DNA of 55,294 nt, counting the filler, from Bipalium vagum (taxonomy: Eukaryota), in NCBI GenBank assembly GCA_037834085.1. It is 3 parts of 3 records of this genome, joined end to end, with 100 filler letters (N's around TTAATTAATTAA, not from the genome) between each part and the next. Parts side by side here need not be neighbours in the genome. Positions count along the whole stretch, not along the records: positions 1 to 22,269 come from JBBMKC010224337.1; 2 more parts are not named here. The stretch is one strand, 5' to 3'. The position numbers were made by a program, and so were the translations under genes. Within the stretch, counting starts at the first letter, position 1. Each line of letters begins with the position of its first letter. Positions 7,526-21,441 of this stretch are shown one piece after another. Below the pieces are notes generated by a model. It was not told the origin of the DNA, made no database searches, and saw only the letters and a list, made by a program, of their open reading frames with translations.

Positions 7526-7741
7526 CTAAACCAATTTTTCCAACGAGGAGCTGTCGTGCTGCTGCTGTTTTCTCTTCGGAGTTTTGCCTTTGGATTTTCG
7601 AATCAGTCTTCTGATTATCGAACTGGGCTTCGGAGTGGTTGATTTTGTCTTGTGATTGAACGCTGGAGTTGAGTCAAGTGATCTGAACGCTTTCACATCA
7701 GTATCCAATCTCAGGCCGCCACACACGGAACCACTAGGTGT
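7526..7741 (-). CDS. Last coding exon of the NuMA-like gene
   Basis: Acceptor ctttag|ACA in phase 0. Translates TPSGSVCGG...TPKPSSIIRRLIRKSKGKTPKRK...LEKLV*. Confidence 0.85.
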   Translation of the reverse strand, partial: TPSGSVCGGLRLDTDVKAFRSLDSTPAFNHKTKSTTPKPSSIIRRLIRKSKGKTPKRKQQQHDSSSLEKLV

Positions 7742-10700
7742 CTAAAGTTTTGTAGATTGATTAGTTGAAATCAATAATTGATGATTTAAAAGATTAAAAT
7801 GAAATCGAAATAATAATTGTAATGAATATTATTATGTAATATATTATTACATATAATATAATATTATATAATTATGTGTAATATTATTTTTGTTATTCTT
7901 TTATTATTATTATTATAGAATTTTTAAAAATTAATATTGGAATTTATTTTAGATTGAGAAATCAATACAATTTTCCTCAACAAAAACTAATAATATCAAT
8001 ATTAAAATATTTTTAAAAATCAATAAAATATATCAGGTAAAGAACTACGTTTTCGTTTTTTCAGTTGTTTAAATTTGTTAGCCCCTGGGTTAGGGATTCT
8101 CATTTATCTACCGATTAAAATTTCCTTTGTTTTAGTTTTCTGCTTAAACATGTGAGCTTCAAATTTACTATATAATTAATGTTAATAACCATTATCCTCT
8201 GGAATATGTGCTCCAAAAGTTCGCTGCACAAATCACAAATTCGAGCAATTATTTATTACGAATGGAAAAATAACAAACACAAATGAAACTATCTCAAAAT
8301 TTAACGAGGTGCTTGGTGAAGGAAAAAATTGGTTCAAAAAATTCAGTAGTGGCGATTTTTCATTGGAAGACAAAGAGAAGTCTGGAAGGCCAAAAAATTT
8401 TGAGGGTTATCAAATTATGGACCTTCTTGAACAAAACAGATCAATTAGTGCTAAAAAATTGCTTCTCAGTTAAATATAAGCGATACAACCATAAGAAGCC
8501 GACTGAAAGCGTTAGGATTCACTTCTAAACTCGATAAATGGTTTCCCCACCAACTAGCTGAAAAAAACCAGTTGGATCGCAGTGAAATTTTTTCAAGAGT
8601 TCTCGAAAGAAACCGAAATGATCCTTTTCTCGACCGGATAGTCACTTGCGATGAAAAGTGGATCTATCATGACAACATAACCAGACGAAGATCGTGGTCG
8701 TTGAAAGCAGAGCTTCCGCAAAACAATGAAAAACGCAACCTTACAAGAAACAATGTTATTTTATGCATTTAGTGGGATTCACGTGGAATTATTTATCAGG
8801 AGTTTCTCAAATCTGTGGAAACCATTAATTCTGATGTCTACTGTGACATGCTAAGAAGAGTTCATGCTATTATGAAGGATAACCAGAGCAGATTGATAAA
8901 CCGAAAACAAGTGATTTTCCATCAAAATAATGCCAAGCCCCACAAATCAATGAAGAAATTGAAGGTTATTCAGGAATTGAACTGGACTCTAATGGAGCAT
9001 CCGCCATATAATCCCGATATCGCCCCATCCGATTTTCATTTGTTCCGGATATTACAGGCTCACGTGATGGGTAAAAATTGTAAAAGTTCCGAAGGTGTAA
9101 GAATGAAGTACTTTCAGTCGGTCATTCAAAGGATCGAGATTTCTTTAATACTGGGATCAATAAACTTCTATTTAGATGGGAGGCAGTAATAGAAAAAGAT
9201 GGGAAATATTGGATTAATTGTTTAATAATGTTTTGATTAATAAATTAAATTTAACTTCAGTCTTAGTTTAGAAAAAACTTATTTTGTTACCTGATATATA
9301 AAATCTGTCTGTAAAATCAACCAAAAAGTTTTACCTGTCGATAATTGATCGAATCTTCCTTCTGATTTGTGATGCCGTTGTCCTGGAAAAGTGAACAAAT
9401 CGATTCCGCTGGTGTTGGACCATTTGTTACGGTCTTAACGTTTGATACTGATCGAACATCGTCCACAGTGGTTGATTGTGAACCGAAAGGCAAGATCTCT
9501 TCCTCACCACCCTTTTCATCGTCGTTGTCTTTGTCTTTCTGCTTGCGTTTCCTGGAAGGATTGTTGATGAAATATTTTCGGTCGATTCTCTGTCGCAACT
9601 CATCCAAGTCGATAACGTTCATCAACTGTGAAGATTCCAGTTTCGAAGCCAATTTTTTCCTCGGTATCACTGGTGGCTTTGGATTAGTCGGTTGTTTTGA
9701 GCCAATGAGACTCGGTTCTTGCTTCATCAATGTCGATTGCTGACTGATTCCGGACTGATGATGATGACCGAAATCTCCGTGACCGACCACTAGACCAGCA
9801 CGAATATTCCCCGTTTCGGACGACACATGTTCCGATGAAAAACCCTCACGATCACCGGAACCCGAACCCGTGGCAAGTTTTTTAGATAAAGGTGCTGTCG
9901 AAGTCATTGAGGATGAGGTCGATGGATTTTTGGATCGATTCTGATTATTATTGCTGGACGTTTCCAAATGTAAACTGCGACGAATTTTCGATGTCAATTG
10001 ATATCGGATTCCATCTTTTCTTTTTTTCAGAGGAGTAATGATTTGATGAAAGTTTTCGTCGGCGTCAAGACGACGATTGGTGTCATATCCAACAGCAATA
10101 GGATTTTTCAGACTACTTTGGTTTGGTTTCGATTCGATGTCTTTGTGCAGCAGAATGTTGGACTCGTCTTCGCACGTGTATGGAGAAAAGACAAACGATT
10201 CGAAAAGCATTTTTGAGGTTGGGTCTAGATATTTTTTTTATCAATCGATTTTTATTTCGTTTTTATTATTATTAATTATTACCATTACTAATTATTACTA
10301 TTACTGATTATTATCATTACTGATTATTATTATTAATTATTACTATCATTCAATCAAAACTAACTGTTCAATCCGAGAGCCGACGCCGAATCTGGCTGCA
10401 AATATTCGACAGGAGGAAGTTGACGATTGAAATTCGGTCGATTGACGACCCATTGGCTCATGCGAGCGTAACGCGACTAGTAAAAATCAATAAAAAAGGC
10501 AATTCTAGCACATGTGAGTATCGATTTATCATTTATCATTTTAAAAATTTGAATCTTACAAAAGAAGCATGCCTTAAAAGTTGATTTTGAAGAAAAATTG
10601 AAAACAATTAAAATCTTAATTTAATACAAAACTTGCTAGATTTATCGATTTACTCATCGATTATCACTTTTTTGAAAGGAATACTCACATTTTCATTGTA

Positions 10701-13700
10701 CTTCTCGCTCATTTGACGCATTTCGTTTTGAGTCTGTTCCCTCAGCACAGTTCGCAAGTTATTGAATTTCGAATTGAGTTCCGCGACGTTTCTTTTCAAT
10801 GTACAATTGTCCTCGCTCAACTAAAAAAAAATCGATACTTTTCAAACAAAAATATATTTATCGATTTTTTATAAACTTTTAAAAGTCAATTATCAAAAAT
10901 ATTATTATTATTATCAATTATTTTTTATTTTATTATCACTTATTACTTATTTATTATTTTTAATATTAATTATATTTATTATTATTAAAAACCATTTTTT
11001 TATCAATATGATTCTATAAAATCGATATTGCAAATTTATTTTACCATGTTTTTCTTGACGGTCAACAGTTGAATTTGTTCCTGAAACTTCTCCACGTCTT
11101 TTGTCAGCGATCCTAAACGTTCTGGATAAAAAAAAAGGTAATAAAAAGAAATCAATGAACAAATGCCCTACCGATATAATTTTTCACGGTTTCCTCGTGT
11201 GTTTGGAGCACCTTTTCCAAGTGGCTTTCGGAGATTTCTCTCAATTTCAAATAGCGCGTTTTCAAAGATTCGTTCTCGGTCTTGATGGAATTGATTTCCG
11301 TTTCGATATTTTGGATCTTATCCAATCGCCTCTGATCCAACGATTGCAAATTGCGAATTTGGTCGTGCAAATTATTTATTTTTTCTGACATCTGAAAAAC
11401 AAAGTGCAAATTGAAAACAACACTGAAATAACTTTTCCCATTAATCTCTGTTTCCCTCCCTTTCCTCTTCAAAAACCAATTACCTCGTTTTTCTTTCTCA
11501 AACTCGCTTTATTGTCATCGATCAGGTCACGATTCCGCTGTTCCAACGCCTTATTTTTGGCGATTAATTCCTGCACCTCACGTTCTAGTCCAGCGGCACT
11601 GGCAGCACGGCTCTTGACTTCCGATCGCAAATGGGCGATTTCTTTCATATTTTCGCTGTCTTCCAATTCGTTCAGTCTCAACACCAGTCGACGACTGGTC
11701 GATTCCAACAGCTCGATTTTCGCTTCCAATGGTTCCAGTTCATTGATTCGTTTGTGCAAGTGACTTTTTTCCATCTGCAAAAAAAGAAATTAAAGAAACG
11801 CAATGGTCGTTTTATCAGGATAAAAAATCGACCTCAAATTCTTGTTCTTTTTGATTCAACTGTTCTCCGGTTCTGATTTGATAATAAAATTATAAACTAT
11901 TAACTAACAAAATAAATAATTCGACAATCATTAATGAAAATCAATAATCTCAATACTAAAAAAAATAAAATATATTACTCTAATTATCAATAATAACCAA
12001 AAATAATAACAATCAATTACATTCAATTCTCCTTTTATGCGATTTTGAAGTTATGCGGTTTATTTTTTAATGAAACTATATTCTTTTTTATGCGATTTTT
12101 TTGTGCAGTTTGTTTTTGTGCACTAAGCCAAAATAGTATACATATAAATATTTATTATGCTTAAGTGATATTGATAATATATCGAATTTATGAAAAGTTA
12201 GTGAATTTATATTTATTCGTTTTGCTTTGTAGATTATGGGTTATAAACAAGATATATGTGATTTCAAAAACGGTCATATTGTAGCTCTGAAATCTACAAA
12301 GCTACACAAATCTCGTTGTGCTGTACAAAATGCATTGAAAGCATGTCTGATGAAAAACGCTAAAATAAATAATTGTCAACGTCCCTGCAAAACAAGTCCC
12401 CGTGATGATCTTTTTTTGAAATCCGTAGTTACGGCATGTCCTATGACGTCGTCTGCAAGAATTAGCCAGTTGACAAAGGAAAGAGACATTGACTTAACTG
12501 CATGATCTGTACGTCGACGACTGGTGAACGATTTTTGTATATTAGCAAGACGTCCGCAAAAAAACAATATTGACAAAAGGTCAAATATCTGGAAGAATAA
12601 AATTCTGCGAAGAGTTGAAGGACAAACCAGCTGAATGGTGACATCAAGTTATATTCACAGATGAAAGTACGTTCCAACAAGTAAGGAGTACAGGTTACAA
12701 TTATGTCAGACCATCAGGCCAGCTGTTCAACCCCAAATTTACTATGAAAACTGTTAACCATACGCCCTCTTTGGCAGTATGGGGAGGAATAACTGAAAAA
12801 GGAACGTTTGGTCTACATATATTTCAAAAAGGCGAGACAATAAATGCTCAAAAATACATAAGCGTCCTTGATAATAAAGTCAAAAATCACATTAACAAAA
12901 CGGGAGCTACATTTCTTCAAAAAGATTCAGTTCCTTTTCACACTGAAAAGATTGTCCGCAAATGGTTCACTGATAACATAGTTAATGTTCTTCCAAATTG
13001 CCCATCCAATTCACCGGACTTAAATTTTATTGAAAACTGCTGGTGTATTATGAAGCAGAAGGTTACTGCCCATTAACCAACTTCTGAACAGCAACTAATA
13101 CAAATCTTGAAGCAAGTGTGGAGAACGGAGATAACGCCAAATTATTGTAAAAAATTAGTTGAAAGTATGCCTAGGTGTATACAAGAAGTACTTGAAAATA
13201 AGGCTTATCCTTCTAAATACTGACATTTATAAAAAAACATTATGTAAACATTTAGTTGTAAATAAATCCCCTTGTATTACTTGCTCTGAATTTTATATAT
13301 CTTTATTTTTTAATAGTGGTCTTAATGTAATGGCCACTACTGTAATTGTATACGATTTAATTAAATTTTTTTTAGTTCCAGTAGAAAGTTTTTAGTTTTT
13401 AAAAAGCTCTTTCAAAAATAATTGTACAGTCAACACTGTATAATTTCATATTTTCCGTCCCGCGAAATTTAACTATTTGTGGAACGTGAATTTATAAAAA
13501 TGGGATTTTATAGGGTATAAAATGGAAAAATTAAAATTACGTAACTTATTACTCAAATACAATATAGAAAAATACAAAATATAGAATAGACAAAAAAACA
13601 AAATATTTGACATAGATCAATTAAATAATAAAATCCGTTATGGACATTTGCTTCAAACCTTCCTGTTTCTTATTTTCAAAGAAAGATTTGATGATTCTTA

Positions 13701-16700
13701 ATGATCTAATCATTTGTGTACAATCTACAGGTTGTTGTTCAAAACCTGAGTATTTGACGTTTCTTTATATTGTGCCTCTTTTTAAAGGAGCATAGCAATC
13801 CTTCTGAAAATTTAAAGTCCTCATCAATATTAAATTTTCTTTGCCTCTTCTCTAATCATTGCATCGGATATGATTGTTATCATTTCATATTTTAATACCC
13901 ATTCCAAAAGTGCTTTTTCGAGTTCTGGGTGCTTCACCTTTCTGTCCCTCATTCCATAATTCATCTTTATATCAATATCTAATCCATATTTTAAGATCTT
14001 AGAAATGATGGAGCGGTCTATATTTTTATGGAAATTTTTCTGTACCCAGATGGCCAATTGATTTAAATTTTTATTATTTTTAAAATATGATATTAATTTA
14101 CCCTTTTCAATAAACGTTAGTGCAATATTTTTTCTCGTTGATTTAGCATTTATTTTTTAAATAGAACTAAAAATGATTATTTAAACAAATATTGCGTAAT
14201 TATTTTTAAAATTATTTGAAAAATTATGGAATTTGTGAAAATACAGAGGTTTTTGTTAAAATTTTTAATGACAAAAATGTCCCAAAAGCTATTTGTGAAA
14301 TTATGCCGAGAGTGAAATTAACGGATGTGAAATTATACAGTGTTGACTGTAGTAATGATAATATCAATTACAAAATTAAATAGTCGGTAAACTTTAATAA
14401 TCAATAAATATTACATAATTATTAATATAAATCAGGTGTAAAATAATAATTTATATAAACTTAATAATTATAATAATAATAATAAATACCTGAATAAGGC
14501 AATTTGAGTTTCTTTCAATTTTTCATTCAGTTTTCGCCAATCGTTTTTCGAATCCCTCAAATCCGACTCCATCTGTTCACGATCGATTTTCATCATGTTC
14601 TCCAATTGTCCGATCTTTTCCTCACATTGCTCTTTGCATTGAGTCTTTTCCAATTTCTCCCGTTCCAAATTACCAACCAAAAGAGCCTTTTCTTGAGCAA
14701 ACTGATTTTCACGCGCCACATTGGCTTTCTGTAGTCTTTCCCTTTCCAATTCAAAATTGACGCGAATTGTTTTGTTTTGTTTACGATTTTCAACAATTTC
14801 TTTCTTCATTGATTCCATTTCATGCATTTTTTCATCGAGATTCGTTTGCAAATCGAAGATCTGTTGTTGAAAAACGCACCAAAACACAAAAAACCAAAAT
14901 CAATAAAATAAAACGATGATTGAAACACGATTGAAAAAAAAATTAAAATCGTTCCCTTCCAACTGCGAATGTTCTCTCTTTCAAAGAGGGTCGTGTTTAA
15001 CGAAATGAATTTCATTATCATGACAAATGGAGGTTTGTAAAACAAAACACAGAAACCAATCGATTAAATTCTTTCCCATATTATTACCTTGGCATTGAAT
15101 GCTTTCTCCATTTCGTGGACCTGGTCATCTCGTTCTTCTTCTACCCTATCGATCTTATCTGACAATTTCTTAATGGTCCCTTGTAAATGAACCTCGTTGT
15201 CATGGCTCTTCTTCAACAGACTATTGTACTTTTCCTTAAACTGGAGAGATTCTTGTTCCACGACTTTCCATTCTTCGCTTACTTTTTGATAATTTCTCAT
15301 TTCGTCTTGTATTATTGATTGAAGACTTTGTATTTTAATATTAAATTCTTCCTGTGAAATATTTATTATTATTATCGATTTAGAGATTTCTATGGGGATA
15401 AATAAAAGATATATATTTTATATATTTTGGGAGATTCGGACTTCTATCTAAGGAATTTTTTGGAAGAATTTATTACCAGAAAATCTATATTTGATCAATA
15501 TTTAAAGGAAAATGTTCTGAAAAAGTATCATAGAAAAATAGATTGTTATTGAAAATCGATAAAAGATCAATATTTGTTAAATCGACACAAATATTTATTT
15601 TGTATGGGAAAATCATTAAAAATGATCATTGACGGTTCTACCAAGTGTTTTGAGACTTGGTGTTCTGCGTCCTTCTCCAAAGAACATTTTCGTAAATCGA
15701 GGAGTTTTGTGAGATTTTCACATTATTATCGACTTTCTATTTATTATAAAAACAATTCCGCTATACGAATAAAAACTTTATCATTTTTAGACGCCCTTAT
15801 TAAACAAGTTCGTATAACGTATAAGGTTTAGAAATAAATATTTATCGAATATGCACCCAAGTCTTGATTTTTTCCTTTGAGAAAATATTCAAAATTGGTA
15901 GAAATTCATAAAAATATAAATTACAGAAAATAAATAAAACTTAGTGGTCCATAAGGAACAAGCTTTATGAAAAGAAAAATCGATAATTAATCAAAAATTA
16001 TGAGAAACTGCTCTTAGTTTAAAATGCATTAAAATTGTGTTGTTATTGATTGAAAGAATGAAATTCGGGTTTGAGAATTAACGAGAATTTAATATATAAT
16101 TTTAGATTAATCGACCAAAATCAATAATGCATCTTTTGCAAGAATATTAAGAATATATCAATGAAATAAAAAATATCTAGAAAAAACAATCAATAAAAAA
16201 TGTACTTTGGCTTTTGTCAATTCTTGGACTTTAGATTCCTTTTCATTGATTAAATTATCGATCTGGCTGTGGAGTAATTTCAAATTATCAATTTTATCGT
16301 CCACAATGGTCTGCATCGATTCCAACTGATTGGTCTTTTCCTTTTCGATTTTATCGATCTCGACTTGTTTACATCGATTTACGTGCTCCAAACTACCAAT
16401 AACGGAATTCAATTTTTCAATCGATATTTGAAAATCATCAATTTTCAATTTCATTTCATCGATTTTTTGTCGACCCACACAAATTTCTCCATCCTTTTCT
16501 CCAATGATTTTGACGCTTCGATCGATATCGATCTGCATAGCTCTGATCGATTGGTTCAATGTTTCAACAGTTTTTCTATTTTCATCTATTGTCTCTTCAA
16601 GAATCGATATTTTCAAAACTTGTTCACTCAAACAGGATTCCTTTTCACTATTGATTTCTTTCTGTAGTGACAATTGATCGCGCAACGATTCCATTTCTGT

Positions 16701-19700
16701 CGACCGTTCTAACAAATGTTGAGCAAGAAGACTTTTTTCCGCCTCAATCTCGTTCAGTTGCTCTTCGATTGTCCGATATTGACTTTCCAACGTACCAATA
16801 ACGGTTTCTTTCAGTCGTTTATCGATTTCTTCAAAACTTTGCTTTTCTTTCATCAGATCGATTTTTGATGTCATTTTCTGAATTTCCTGTGCTGCCGATC
16901 GATTAGATTCTTCAAATTTAACTTTCGATTTTTCAAACTCTTTCACCAATTCGTTGTGATCGATAATCAATTTCTGATAGAGACCATCTATTTCCATCAA
17001 ATAATCGTTTCGTGCTTTTTGGTCCGATTGATTTTTTCTCATTTCTTCCAATAATAGCTCTAATCCCGAAACCCTCTCTTTCTCGCCAGCCAGTTCAAGG
17101 ATTTTTTCATTTAAATATCGACTTTTTTTGTCCAGCTCCTCTCGCACGCAAACAAGTTCCTCCTTAATGTTAGATATTGTTTCCTGATATTTCTGTGACT
17201 CGCTTTCTTTCATAACCATTTCATCGTTTTGTCGGCACAATTTCCCACTAGTTTCTTCCAATTGTTCAAGGATTTTGGCATTGATTTTATAGGATGTTTT
17301 CAATTCTGCTGTCAATGTATCGATTTTTTCTTCACAACTCACAATTTGTTGATCGAGATCTTGGATCTGTTCCGCTTTGTTTCTTTCCCAATCGATTGCG
17401 TTAAGTTCAATTGTCGATTGCAATTGTGATATCGATTTTTCACTTTTATGTAATTTCGACTGCAGATCGTTCAAAATTTCGTCGTAACCACCCGCTTCAC
17501 GTTCAATGGTCAACAGTCGATCATTCAGTTCCTTTGCTATTAGTTTTTCATGGCTTAACTCCCGTTCTTTAATGAACAATTGGTGCTCGTGATCTCGTTT
17601 CATTTTGTCCAGTTTTAGTTCCATAGCACTTTCAATTGCCAATCGATCACAATTGTGCTTTTCCAACAACTCATTTTTCGCTTCCGATAATCGATTTATG
17701 GTGACTTGTTGCTGCTGTGATTGCGATTCAAATTTCAATTTCATCAACTCAATATTGTGCTCATATTGATCAACGGTCTCCTGATATCGGAAATTGAGTT
17801 CTCCTGTTTCCATTTTGATTTTTTCCAATTCCCTTTCCAAACAATCAATTTCCACCAGCTTTCCACGGAAATCACGGATTGTTTCGTTTTGAATCAATTG
17901 AGATTGGATTCGGGCAGAATTTCTCAAATTTTCCAAATCGATTTTCAATTCGCTAACACTATCCGTAAACATTTTTCCAATCGTTATCATTTGGGCTGTC
18001 AATTTTTCAATCTTATTGTCACGGTGTCGTCTTTGTTCTCTCAATTTCTCATCAATCCATTTCCCAAGACTTTCTATATCTTTTTCCTCAACAGATCGAT
18101 CGATTCCGTAGTCTTCTCCTTCACCATCATTATCATCCAATAGAAACCGTTTAATATTCTCAACCAATCGTTCGTATTGATCTATTTTCATGTTGAAATG
18201 ATTCATCTGTGAATGAATTCGTTTTTCCTTGTCCAAAACATTTTCTAATTCATCCCCCAAAAGCTTCCGTTCATTCGTTAATTGGAACACGATGTTCTGA
18301 TAATGGGACACACTTGAGTCCATTTCGTCGAATATCGATTGTAAATCTTTGAAAATTTCTTCTGTTAATCGATCATTCACGTCATCCATTGGCTCATCGA
18401 TTGTTTCATTAATATCCCTAGAAATCTTTTTCCTTTTCAGTAATAAAAAAAAATAATTTAATAATAATAATTATCCATGAAAATCACTTTTTCAAGGTAT
18501 AACAAAGCCGAGCCAATTTCTTTTGGTCGTCATTTATCATTTCGAATTTTGCATTGGTTTCGCAAAGTTTGTTATTGAGATCTTCCAATTGTCTGGTAAC
18601 GGACTCGTAGAGGTCTTTAGATACAGTTCCTTCTTTCAACAAAGCCAATTCACTTTTCAATTCATCTCGTTCCATTTCCACAACTGCAGACATGCACTCG
18701 GGATTGAAATACGACGAGTTCAAAGACATGTCTGCAAGAGTTACAAAATGGATAATTAATGAAACCGTTTTAAAAACGAAAAATCATTATAGAATCAATT
18801 ATGATATCAGTTTGTGTAGTATGAAATTTTTAGGTAATGAAATTACCAACTTTAACTGTTTTTTATTTGTTATCGGCTTGATATTTTACCATTGTTTTTT
18901 GCGTTGGTAAATTATATATCTGTCTTGTTTGAAAATATCATTTTAATTTGTCATATTTATTTGTAATTTATTAAACTTTGTTTTTCATTTTACAAATTTC
19001 ATACAACACAACCTGATATTAAAAAGATATGAAAGAGAAAGAGAGAAAATGGGAGGCTGAGATTGAAAAAATGTCTTTAAAAGAGAAACATAAAGAATGG
19101 ACAGAGAGATCGAGAGGGTGGAAGAGAAATAGACTGAATTAAAGAGAAAGATTTAGAAAAGTCGAGAAGAAGAAAAGAATCAATAGATTATTTTGAATTG
19201 ACTTTTAATAAAAAAAATCAATATATCAAAATAAATTGAAAAACGATGGTTTTAACCTGACAAACTGTCGATATTGGAATGTCGTTGTTGTAAACTTTGC
19301 ACGTGACTTTGCAGTTCCATCAATTGTGATTCGGTTTCTGATAATCGATTTTTCGTTTCCGTCAATTCCGAGACCATGGTCTTGTAATTATTTATGTCCA
19401 CCATGAGATTTTCGATTTTAACTCGTCGATCAATAGCCAATGCTTTGAAGTGGCTGGATTCCCGATTCTGCAATGAAAGGAAGAGTTCATTATTGAATAA
19501 AATATCGATCGGTTCATCACAATTGAAAAAAGTCACCTCAATTTTCAAGAGTTTATTTTCTTCACATTTCGACTCTAATTGAGAACTCAGTGTTTGGATC
19601 TCGTTCGATTTGTCCTGCCAATCCTTCAGCTTTTCTTCCAATCTAATTGAAAAGGGTTGAAAATTTATCGATACCACATATTGAGAAATCAATAAAATCG

Positions 19701-21441
19701 TTGAAAGTTAAATAATATTTCTGAATATTATTATCGATTATTTTATTTAACATGTTTGCAATAAATAACAAATTTAAATCAATGAAAAATCGTTATTATA
19801 ATTATTATTTTTAAAGGAAGAACATCTCAAACCTTTTGTTTTGATAAGTTAAATGTTGAAGTCGTTCGATTTCTTCTCTTTTCTCCATGAGCAAATCGTC
19901 TTTGGAGTGAATTTCTGATTTCAATTGCCTCATTTCTTTTTCCAAGGTACGATACTTTTGGATCCAACCCTGCAATGTTCGATCCATCTCTGTTTCCACG
20001 CTCGTGTTCAGGAACAATTGATGTTCAAGCTGTTTTACGTTCTTTTCCAATTCGCGGTTGGTTTTCATCAAACTCTGAATTCAAATATCAATAAAATCTT
20101 TAAGGAAAACTAATGTTACTTTGCCCTGAAACGTTGGCGACTTGACATGATTGACCAAATTAGCGCTTGATGGCGGCGAAAGAGAGGAAAACGAATTGTT
20201 TCTGTCGTTGACATTTGGGAAAATTTCGTACGATTGAGAAGCCTTCATTTCCTGGTGAACCTTTTTCTTGTGGGCAGTGATAAACCTGTCATTGTCCAAA
20301 TGGGACAAATGCCTTTCTCTGATCGGTGAAAAGTAACTCGTTTGATTTTCCTTGTCTGTAATGAAAAGAAAGCGTCATTTTGAAAATTGCGATTATTTTT
20401 CAATAATTTTCGGTGAATCAAAACTTTTTTATAGTGAGAATTAGAAGACCACAAAAAATCATTCACGTTCCATCAAAAATTAAAATATAATAATAATAAT
20501 AATAAATAATATTGATATTCATTATAATATAAACTGGTATAATTTATCGACTGAATAAGCCTCAATATTGAAAATCGATAATTGACTTTAAACGTCAGAT
20601 CTATATAAACTGCCAATCAATAATCACGAACTCAAATAACTTGACAACTTTGGAATGGAGATCGCGTCAAATCGACATTGTTTATAATAATCGAACTAAT
20701 CAGTCAATTGTTGATTTTATTGATGAAACAGTAAGAAAAAAACTTTATTAAAGAATTTTCAAATAAATAAATTATTAATTTTCAGATTTAAGCGATCAGA
20801 TCAAGTTTATTGAAATCCTAGTTTTTTTAACAAGTTGAAAAATTAAATTTACTTATTGATCATTTTTTAAAATCAATATTTTATATTATTATTACCGTTC
20901 ACCATTAAGGCACTTTCCACGTCTTCTTCAGTAATTGAAACTTTCTCGTTATGTTTGGCTATAAAAGGTCTAAACATGACCGAAACGTTCTTCTGGAAAT
21001 GTTTTGGGATATTGTCGCTGAGTTTTATGAGATTGGTCGATGTATTGTTATCATCTTCGTCACCAATCAATATATTGACAACAATACATAACAATAATAT
21101 CTTAATATTATCTGAATTAATTAATATTGTTGAAAGGATGTGCATTTACTTTCGACAGTTCAAAATCTGATAAATTGTCTTTATTTCCTAAGTCTAAAAC
21201 ATCTTCAATGCTTGTCATGAAAATATCTGAATAAAATCTAAAATGTTTTAATTTCAGCTTCCCATTACTAACCTGATAATTTTTCTATCAAATTATCGAT
21301 GTCTAGTTTTAAGCTTGGTTGGTTTATAATTTTGAAAAACAATGACAGGTTTTTAAATGATGAAAATCCTTTAATGTCACATTCTAAAATATTTTCGGCA
21401 CAATACAATAAGCATTGCATATTTTCTTCGTTTACTGGCAT
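7526..21441 (-). CDS. NUMA1: NuMA-like (NuMA/Mud/LIN-5 family) large coiled-coil mitotic protein, 19 coding exons, about 2104 aa
   Basis: Hand-built exons, all GT-AG and phase-compatible: 21441-21273, 21226-21150, 21100-20896, 20355-20120, 20074-19833, 19642-19537, 19467-19257, 18731-18488, 18417-16206, 15351-15088, 14860-14490, 11872-11833, 11774-11484, 11391-11172, 11121-11045, 10820-10689, 10476-10365, 10224-9335, 7741-7526 (6315 nt). The N-terminus (MPVNEENMQCLLYC..SLFFKIIN..SDFELSKILLL..FQKNVSVMFRPFI..EEDVESAL) resembles the NuMA Hook domain as I recall it. It is followed by a long E/K/L/Q-rich heptad region and a low-complexity tail with TPLKKRK, RKRK and TPKRK. The gene structure is well supported; the orthology is an inference. 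Confidence 0.7.
8031..9296 (+). mobile_element. Full-length decayed mariner (DD34D) in the last intron of the NuMA-like gene
   Basis: Imperfect TIRs TATCAGGTAA.../...TTACCTGATA with TA flanks; 1266 bp. Motifs W(F)PHQL, IVTCDEKWIY, FHQNNAKPH, HPPYNPDIAPSDFHLF; frameshifts present. Confidence 0.93.
9335..10224 (-). CDS. C-terminal tail exon of the NuMA-like gene (disordered, NLS and CDK motifs)
   Basis: 297-aa ORF. Acceptor tctag at 10224, with an in-frame alternative AAG acceptor at 10167. Donor CAG|gtaa at 9335. Motifs YTCEDE, TPLKKRK, DLDELRQR, SRKRKQK. Confidence 0.85.
12125..13342 (+). mobile_element. Decayed Tc1 (DD34E) element, intronic
   Basis: VIFTDESTF, VWGGI, FLQKDSVPFH and PSNSPDLNFIENCW motifs. 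Right end ...GGCCACTACTG+TA; left TIR not identified. Confidence 0.88.
13427..14349 (-). mobile_element. Internally deleted pogo/Tigger element, intronic
   Basis: 22-bp perfect TIR CAGTCAACACTGTATAATTTCA with TA TSDs. CENP-B-type HTH ORF (HPELEKALLEWV..ISDAMIREEAK); no intact DDE. Confidence 0.9.
16206..18417 (-). CDS. 2.2-kb central coiled-coil exon of the NuMA-like gene
   Basis: 743-aa ORF in the track. Acceptor ttctag|G at 18417, donor AAA|gtacat at 16206. Heptad-rich, with almost no proline. Confidence 0.93.
19020..19180 (+). repeat. Purine-rich (GA/GAAA) low-complexity tract in an intron
   Basis: Degenerate (GA)n/(GAAA)n run visible directly. Confidence 0.6.
20896..21441 (-). CDS. Exons 1-3 of the NuMA-like gene: Hook/CH-like N-terminal domain (about 150 aa)
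   Basis: ATG at 21441. Introns of 46 nt (21272-21227) and 49 nt (21149-21101, AAG acceptor). Exon 3 ends in phase 1 (G|gtaata) and joins 20355 to give ..VN-D-KENQ. Confidence 0.7.

Follow-up and report, generated by a model that had tools for sequence, protein, structure and literature searches.

A predicted 19-exon gene of Bipalium vagum encodes a long coiled-coil protein with a NuMA-like layout, probably a divergent NuMA/Mud/LIN-5 orthologue

A 55,294-nucleotide (nt) stretch of Bipalium vagum DNA (assembly GCA_037834085.1), here called the window and used as the reference for all positions given without a contig name, carries in its first part (positions 1-22269, JBBMKC010224337.1) a long gene on the minus strand that runs from 21441 to 7526. 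We report that this is a real single-copy gene with a predicted structure of 19 exons and a coding sequence of 6315 nt, free of internal stops, which specifies a protein of 2104 amino acids (aa) composed of a head, a linker, a long coiled-coil rod and a tail. The initial annotation had described the product as a hidden member of the NuMA family of spindle-pole proteins. Our comparison with published landmarks of human NuMA, which connects dynein with spindle microtubules, suggests that it is most likely a divergent NuMA/Mud/LIN-5 orthologue (with a probability of roughly 0.6), i.e. an expected gene, since NuMA-type proteins are expected in bilaterians and finding one is in itself unsurprising.

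The exons were chained using a dynamic-programming script, then curated by hand from the sequence, and the model was rebuilt; the script had been trained on the rod, such that exons without coil were skipped and the tail was over-split, and its result was replaced by the hand curation. All 19 exons predicted in silico have GT donors and AG acceptors and agree in phase. The rebuilt model reproduces exactly the 19 exons and the 2104 aa (then given as approximately 2104) counted before, and includes every peptide block that had been quoted (MPVNEENMQCLLYCAENIL, SLFFKIIN, SDFELSK/ILLLC, FQKNVSVMFRPFIAKH and EEDVESAL). The evidence for coding greatly exceeds what chance would give: the longest open frame extends over 770 codons in DNA of ≈30% GC, the exons have a GC content of 38% vs 27% for the introns (the range in the 1-22269 part is 21-40%), and an open frame of at least 90 codons, as seen at exon 3, appeared in 8 of 2000 shuffles of the surrounding DNA. 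Mini-introns of 45-92 nt recur along the gene and the few long introns carry transposon debris; the gene as a whole, as well as exon 18 taken separately, is present in a single copy in the assembly. As to the claim that the open reading frame (ORF) track misses the first two exons, this is correct for exon 2, which at 25 aa is below any ORF threshold, but not for exon 1, which is listed as a 57-aa ATG ORF.

Some parts of the model are less secure than others. The count of 19 was reached by splitting a former exon 6 at a 69-nt in-frame intron-like segment (donor GTGACT, acceptor TCCTTTCATTGCAG, 32% GC), the sole candidate of this kind within any exon; the segment is possibly retained, and keeping it gives 23 extra non-coil residues and a protein of 2127 aa. 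Exon 12 is a micro-exon, and for exon 17 there are two in-frame acceptors at a distance of 81 nt, where use of the one at 10395 drops 27 codons including the LPPVEYL motif while the longer form, with a GC content of 52%, contains it. Alternative splicing at 10395-10476 (-) would thus add or remove 27 residues just past the rod.

The predicted protein has an acidic head of 150 aa (residues 1-150) split over three exons, and modelling of exon 3 alone with AlphaFold2 gave four helices with a pLDDT score (predicted local distance difference test) of 57, which is too low for a fold search. The linker (151-229) comprises 79 Ser- and Pro-rich residues. It is followed by a rod (230-1697) of 1468 residues, of which three are prolines; the heptad score of the rod is 0.46 vs 0.27 for shuffled sequence, and its length comes to ≈218 nm when computed at 0.1485 nm per residue. 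The tail (1698-2104, 407 aa) is rich in Pro, Ser and Thr and has several [ST]P sites and two basic clusters; its last 45 residues have a net charge of +11, and near this end T2058-P is accompanied by two further T-P sites, which is evidence of composition and position only.

Human NuMA is 2115 aa long, with a Hook domain at 1-153, a coil that extends to 1699, a tail at 1700-2115 and a rod measuring ≈207-210 nm (PMC8047419). The size and domain order of the B. vagum protein match this layout, as had been claimed: 2104 aa, a head of 150 residues, a linker, a rod of ≈1470 aa that ends near residue 1697 (1699 in human), and a tail of ≈400 aa. The two proteins also share a Ser/Pro linker that carries an S-x-S-P-x-S cluster as well as [ST]-P-x-F-Q where the rod begins, a putative hydrophobic motif 45-70 residues beyond the rod end, basic clusters resembling nuclear localisation signals, and a T-P site some 50-60 residues from a strongly basic C-terminus.

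At the junction between head and rod the comparison is based on published sites. In human NuMA, S198, S200-P, S203-P and T211 adjoin HBS1 at 212-239 (10.1101/2025.07.19.665708), the coil begins at P212, and Q215 is a conserved residue (10.1101/2024.11.26.625568). The counterpart in the model consists of S208, S210-P and S213, then S223-P224-T-F-Q227, and then the coil. The pattern S.SP.S.{5,11}[ST]P..Q, built from the published human sites, has one match in the model; shuffling residues 151-260 reproduced it in 4 of 200,000 trials, and shuffling the whole protein in none of 20,000. Further into the rod, the N-terminus of CC2 in human NuMA carries a Spindly-type site (E407/L409/L413; 10.1101/2024.11.26.625568). 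Here a coil break at P426 is followed by E427-C-M429-S-A-V-V433, 203 residues past P224, and with its low information content this site is to be seen as a lead only. FNNEL at residue 359 (in the model that keeps the 69-nt segment) was considered as a Spindly motif and rejected, as it lies in that intron-like in-frame segment.

Two landmarks in the tail follow. The human clustering motif spans E1768-P1777 and includes Y1774 (PMC6037482, PMC8047419). In the model MLFESFVFSP (1742-1751), with LPPVEYL 20 residues upstream, fits this motif at the E and P anchors and has Val in place of Tyr. The pattern LPP.?VE.L was found in 7 of 100,000 tail shuffles, and it was modelled on the human protein and written after the match had been seen. 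No printed sequence of the human 187-217 peptide was found in the papers or their supplements; the versions of the human 187-217 and 1768-1777 stretches used for the comparison agree with all residue numbers in the papers. Closer to the C-terminus, human NuMA has a cyclin-dependent kinase (CDK) site at T2055 and a basic, microtubule- and DNA-binding end, with MTBD2 at 2002-2115 (PMC8047419). The B. vagum protein has AFRSLDSTP, with T2058-P, then SIIRR and a basic end. Taken together, at least five putative landmarks occur in the human order and within ≈30 residues of the human numbering over 2100 residues, which we consider to be the strongest single argument for a NuMA identity.

Database searches did not add to this argument. 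Searched exon by exon, Pfam gave no family on the head, linker or tail exons even at an E-value (E) of ≤10, and on the rod exons sub-threshold coiled-coil noise only, with nothing below E = 0.06 for exon 9. The profile PF21670 (HOOK_N_NuMA) matched neither the exons of the gene nor any other part of the genome; hence no better NuMA candidate is visible in the assembly, and this gene also fails that profile. When exons 1, 3, 4, 5, 18 and 19 were compared to PDB chains using phmmer no NuMA chain was returned, from a collection that presumably holds the NuMA Hook domain as well as NuMA-LGN complexes and peptides, and the tail exon and a 50-aa piece of the tail gave nothing at E ≤10 in the same type of search. 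A word search with exon 9 revealed no relatives, HMMER with this exon against 1.84 billion representatives gave a single weak match (E = 2.3e-4) to an unrelated-looking 330-aa coiled-coil-like protein, the ESM Atlas gave nothing above 0.81 for the tail, and a metagenome scan for relatives of the rod exon detected none. The searched collections contain no close relative of this protein, and exon-sized queries are too short for distant ones and, in the word search, for proteins as long as 2100 aa. Moreover, the known relatives Mud and LIN-5 are barely alignable beyond short motifs (PMC8047419, PMC6525239), so silence in such searches is expected even for a true orthologue. With no tool recognising the protein, the NuMA assignment rests on collinearity with the published human landmarks. 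The proposed orthology is therefore supported in part: size, domain order and the collinear landmarks speak for it, while none of the exons could be tied to NuMA by a profile or sequence tool. The description of the protein as hidden is fair insofar as standard tools return nothing and automated annotation would yield an anonymous coiled-coil protein.

It is possible, albeit unlikely, that the gene encodes a long coiled-coil protein, lineage-specific or unrelated in some other way, in which the NuMA-like plan and motifs arose by convergence or chance. The failure of the profile, sequence, Atlas and PDB searches counts in favour of this, and several features of the sequence weigh against orthology. 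Short motifs recur easily in Ser/Pro-rich disordered regions, and FESFVFSPYTCEDE resembles two different human tail motifs, showing how ambiguous such short matches are. Patterns other than that of the junction were also rare in shuffles and are leads only, since most of them were modelled on the human protein and written after both sequences had been seen, with the consequence that the shuffle counts make them look more significant than they are. Beyond the junction, the acidic patch is less pronounced than in human NuMA. Two hallmarks of the family, the LGN/Pins-binding peptide (1900-1926 in human) and the NLM (1922-1957), have no clear counterpart in the tail. Weak candidates for the LGN peptide were noted by eye (TCEDE at 1753 and DLDELRQRI near 1941), of which the former, as SF..TCEDE, was downgraded since, by position, this stretch is a better fit to the clustering motif. 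The basic clusters that resemble nuclear localisation signals do not sit where the human ones do, the tail past the clustering motif is longer than in vertebrate NuMA (NUMA1), and the head is without detectable sequence or profile similarity to its vertebrate counterpart. Against an unrelated origin stand the rarity of the junction pattern and its placement exactly at the boundary between head and rod, the order and spacing of the landmarks, and the poor alignability of Mud and LIN-5 outside short motifs, and we accordingly favour the NuMA/Mud/LIN-5 assignment.

A different doubt concerns the 5' part of the model, i.e. that exons 1-2 or 1-3 are outside the mRNA and translation starts downstream (e.g. 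at the ATG at 21145 that the open frame of exon 3 has of its own) or in an unseen upstream exon. This part is a weak point also for the NuMA assignment: exons 1 and 2 have a GC content of 27%, near the intron level, and intron 2 relies on an unusual AAG acceptor, the only in-frame solution. We nevertheless consider such an error rather unlikely, as phase is kept across all three junctions and their GT donors are good, the mini-introns of 46 and 49 nt are like those in the rest of the gene, the ATG at 21441 has an in-frame stop just upstream, and the joined head, at 150 aa, matches the NuMA Hook domain in size (PMC8047419).

That the gene instead belongs to the Hook or Hook-related (CCDC88: Girdin, Daple) families is very improbable: these share the general layout of an N-terminal helical Hook domain, a long dimeric coil in a dynein-adaptor plan and a Ser-rich tail, and ELSK-ILLLC-IVVN across the exon 2/3 junction resembles a Hook-family helix, but HOOK_N (PF19047) readily detects three other loci in the genome (83.6, 56.9 and 25.9 bits) and none in this gene at E ≤10, which speaks against the gene being a Hook or Girdin, the joined head aligns locally with those three loci at the level of noise only, the 79-aa linker between head and rod is as in published NuMA (Hook 1-153, coil from 212) whereas in Hook proteins there is hardly any spacer between Hook domain and coil, and the rod of ≈1470 aa is NuMA-sized and far longer than theirs. 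Nor did any Hook, Girdin or golgin appear among the best hits of the exon-by-exon searches.

What was obtained directly is the in silico exon structure, the composition, the heptad periodicity, the motifs with their order and a lack of canonical Hook signatures; the mechanism outlined next for the favoured NuMA/Mud/LIN-5 orthologue is modelled on published human NuMA. In that protein family the Hook-type domain binds the dynein light intermediate chain. Two chains would pair through the heptad rod, and the helical heads together with the rod start (P224-x-F-Q227) would engage dynein, while the hydrophobic site past the first coil break may contact the pointed end of dynactin. The CDK-type S-P sites S210 and S223 just upstream could turn dynein binding on in mitosis. 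The tail may self-cluster through the hydrophobic ESFVFSP, the basic clusters KKRK and RKRKQK would bring the protein into the interphase nucleus, and the strongly basic C-terminus would attach to microtubules, with the T-P site at 2058 as a control point. The predicted net effect is a dimeric tether between dynein and microtubules by which microtubule minus ends are held and focused.

According to Azimzadeh and colleagues in 2012, planarians and their close relatives reportedly divide without centrosomes, which would make a NuMA orthologue an obvious first candidate for gathering minus ends into poles; none of the papers that we searched describes a flatworm NuMA. A near-identical rod length and a conserved CDK/HBS1 junction across almost the whole bilaterian span would mark the truly constrained parts of NuMA, and in practical terms the assignment gives a possible identity to a protein that would otherwise be annotated as an anonymous coiled coil. 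We find it doubtful, on the sequence at hand, that NuMA here kept the dynein-engaging junction, the rod length and the microtubule-binding end while the region that binds LGN/Pins and includes the NLM was lost or rewritten; if true, this would fit a specialisation for pole focusing in acentrosomal division and not for cortical spindle orientation. The assembly (440.8 Mb in 272,664 contigs) does include an LGN/Pins-type gene on contig C259357 (1252-8160, +), with a TPR_12 exon and then three GoLoco motifs on the same strand; thus the usual cortical partner of NuMA exists in the genome, and this gene is a candidate partner.

Table 1. Predicted exons, motifs and other features of the gene, in window positions
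Feature	Position	Strand	Content and basis
Exon 1	21273..21441	-	ATG at 21441; covers aa 1-56 and one extra nt; head starts here with its first helices, SLFFKIIN included; in-frame stop five codons upstream of the ATG; donor GTTAGT; 27% GC; least certain exon
Exon 2	21150..21226	-	aa 57-82, ends SDFELSK; acceptor ttattcag, donor GTAAAT, in phase
Exon 3	20896..21100	-	aa 83-150, end of head; inside a 90-codon open frame; AAG acceptor
Exon 4	20120..20355	-	aa 151-229, Ser/Pro-rich linker; acceptor ttttcattacag, donor GTAACA, 42% GC
Head-rod junction motif	20126..20200	-	aa 203-227: NNSFSSLSPPS then SPTFQ, just ahead of the coil
Exon 5	19833..20074	-	aa 230-310, coiled coil begins
Exon 6	19537..19642	-	Rod
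Optional in-frame 69-nt intron	19468..19536	-	Splice-site pattern
Exon 7	19257..19467	-	Rod
Exon 8	18488..18731	-	Starts with coil break SLNSSYFNP; next coil opens E427-C-M-S-A-V-V433 (18699-18679)
Exon 9	16206..18417	-	Giant rod exon, 2212 nt, 737 codons, within the 770-codon open frame
Exon 10	15088..15351	-	Rod
Exon 11	14490..14860	-	Rod
Exon 12	11833..11872	-	Rod; 40-nt micro-exon, based on phase and splice sites only
Exon 13	11484..11774	-	Rod
Exon 14	11172..11391	-	Rod
Exon 15	11045..11121	-	Rod
Exon 16	10689..10820	-	Rod end, near aa 1697
Exon 17	10365..10476	-	First tail exon; LPPVEYL 10419-10399, aa 1719-1725; acceptor tttttactag, 52% GC, open frame
Exon 18	9335..10224	-	Tail, aa 1738-2033; ESFVFSP 10201-10181 (aa 1745-1751), TCEDE 10177-10163, KKRK 10027-10016, RKRKQK cluster later
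Exon 19	7526..7741	-	aa 2034-2104 and TAG stop; acceptor aaaactttag, phase 0; AFRSLDSTP with T2058-P 7690-7664; SIIRR 7621-7607; last 45 residues 7663-7529, net charge +11
Tc1/mariner-type transposase remnant	12744..13073	+	Intron 11; Pfam DDE_3, E = 1.4e-10; outside the gene product

The three canonical HOOK_N exons elsewhere in the assembly are located on contigs C265015 (25-210, -), C206465 (1455-1607, -) and C263491 (5866-6012, -) and presumably belong to Hook or Hook-related genes. At the end of another contig (C221364:2047-2226, +) a 60-codon frame resembles exon 3, with 32% identity over 53 aa, an alignment z of ≈11 and a genome-level E of 0.05, and no frames resembling exons 1 or 2 were seen upstream of it; possible explanations are a duplicate in decay, a paralogous exon of the head, or chance in composition.

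Traces of mobile elements other than the one tabulated were seen in and near the gene. Intron 11 carries a marginal Tc5/pogo helix-turn-helix match at 13833-14156 (-; E = 1.7e-4), and mariner-like ORFs were recognised by eye in intron 18 (8283-9189, +) and downstream of the gene (2171-2608, +), where Pfam gave no match at 1e-3.

Finally, the assembly holds a complete mitochondrial cox1 gene (C253947:276-1577) with AAA at four positions, GFG-N-W, R-x-NN-LSFW, F-N-TSFFD and GV-N-xTFFPQH, where we take Asn to be conserved in animal COX1, in keeping with the flatworm/echinoderm mitochondrial code. Combined with the mini-introns and the AT richness of the nuclear DNA, this indicates a rhabditophoran flatworm as the probable host. 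Further cox1 sequences comprise a second one of the same type and differing sequence (C246471), a third of another type (C253320) and many short or stop-ridden copies, and these extra copies could stem from mitochondrial DNA copied into the nucleus, from heteroplasmy or from other organisms.

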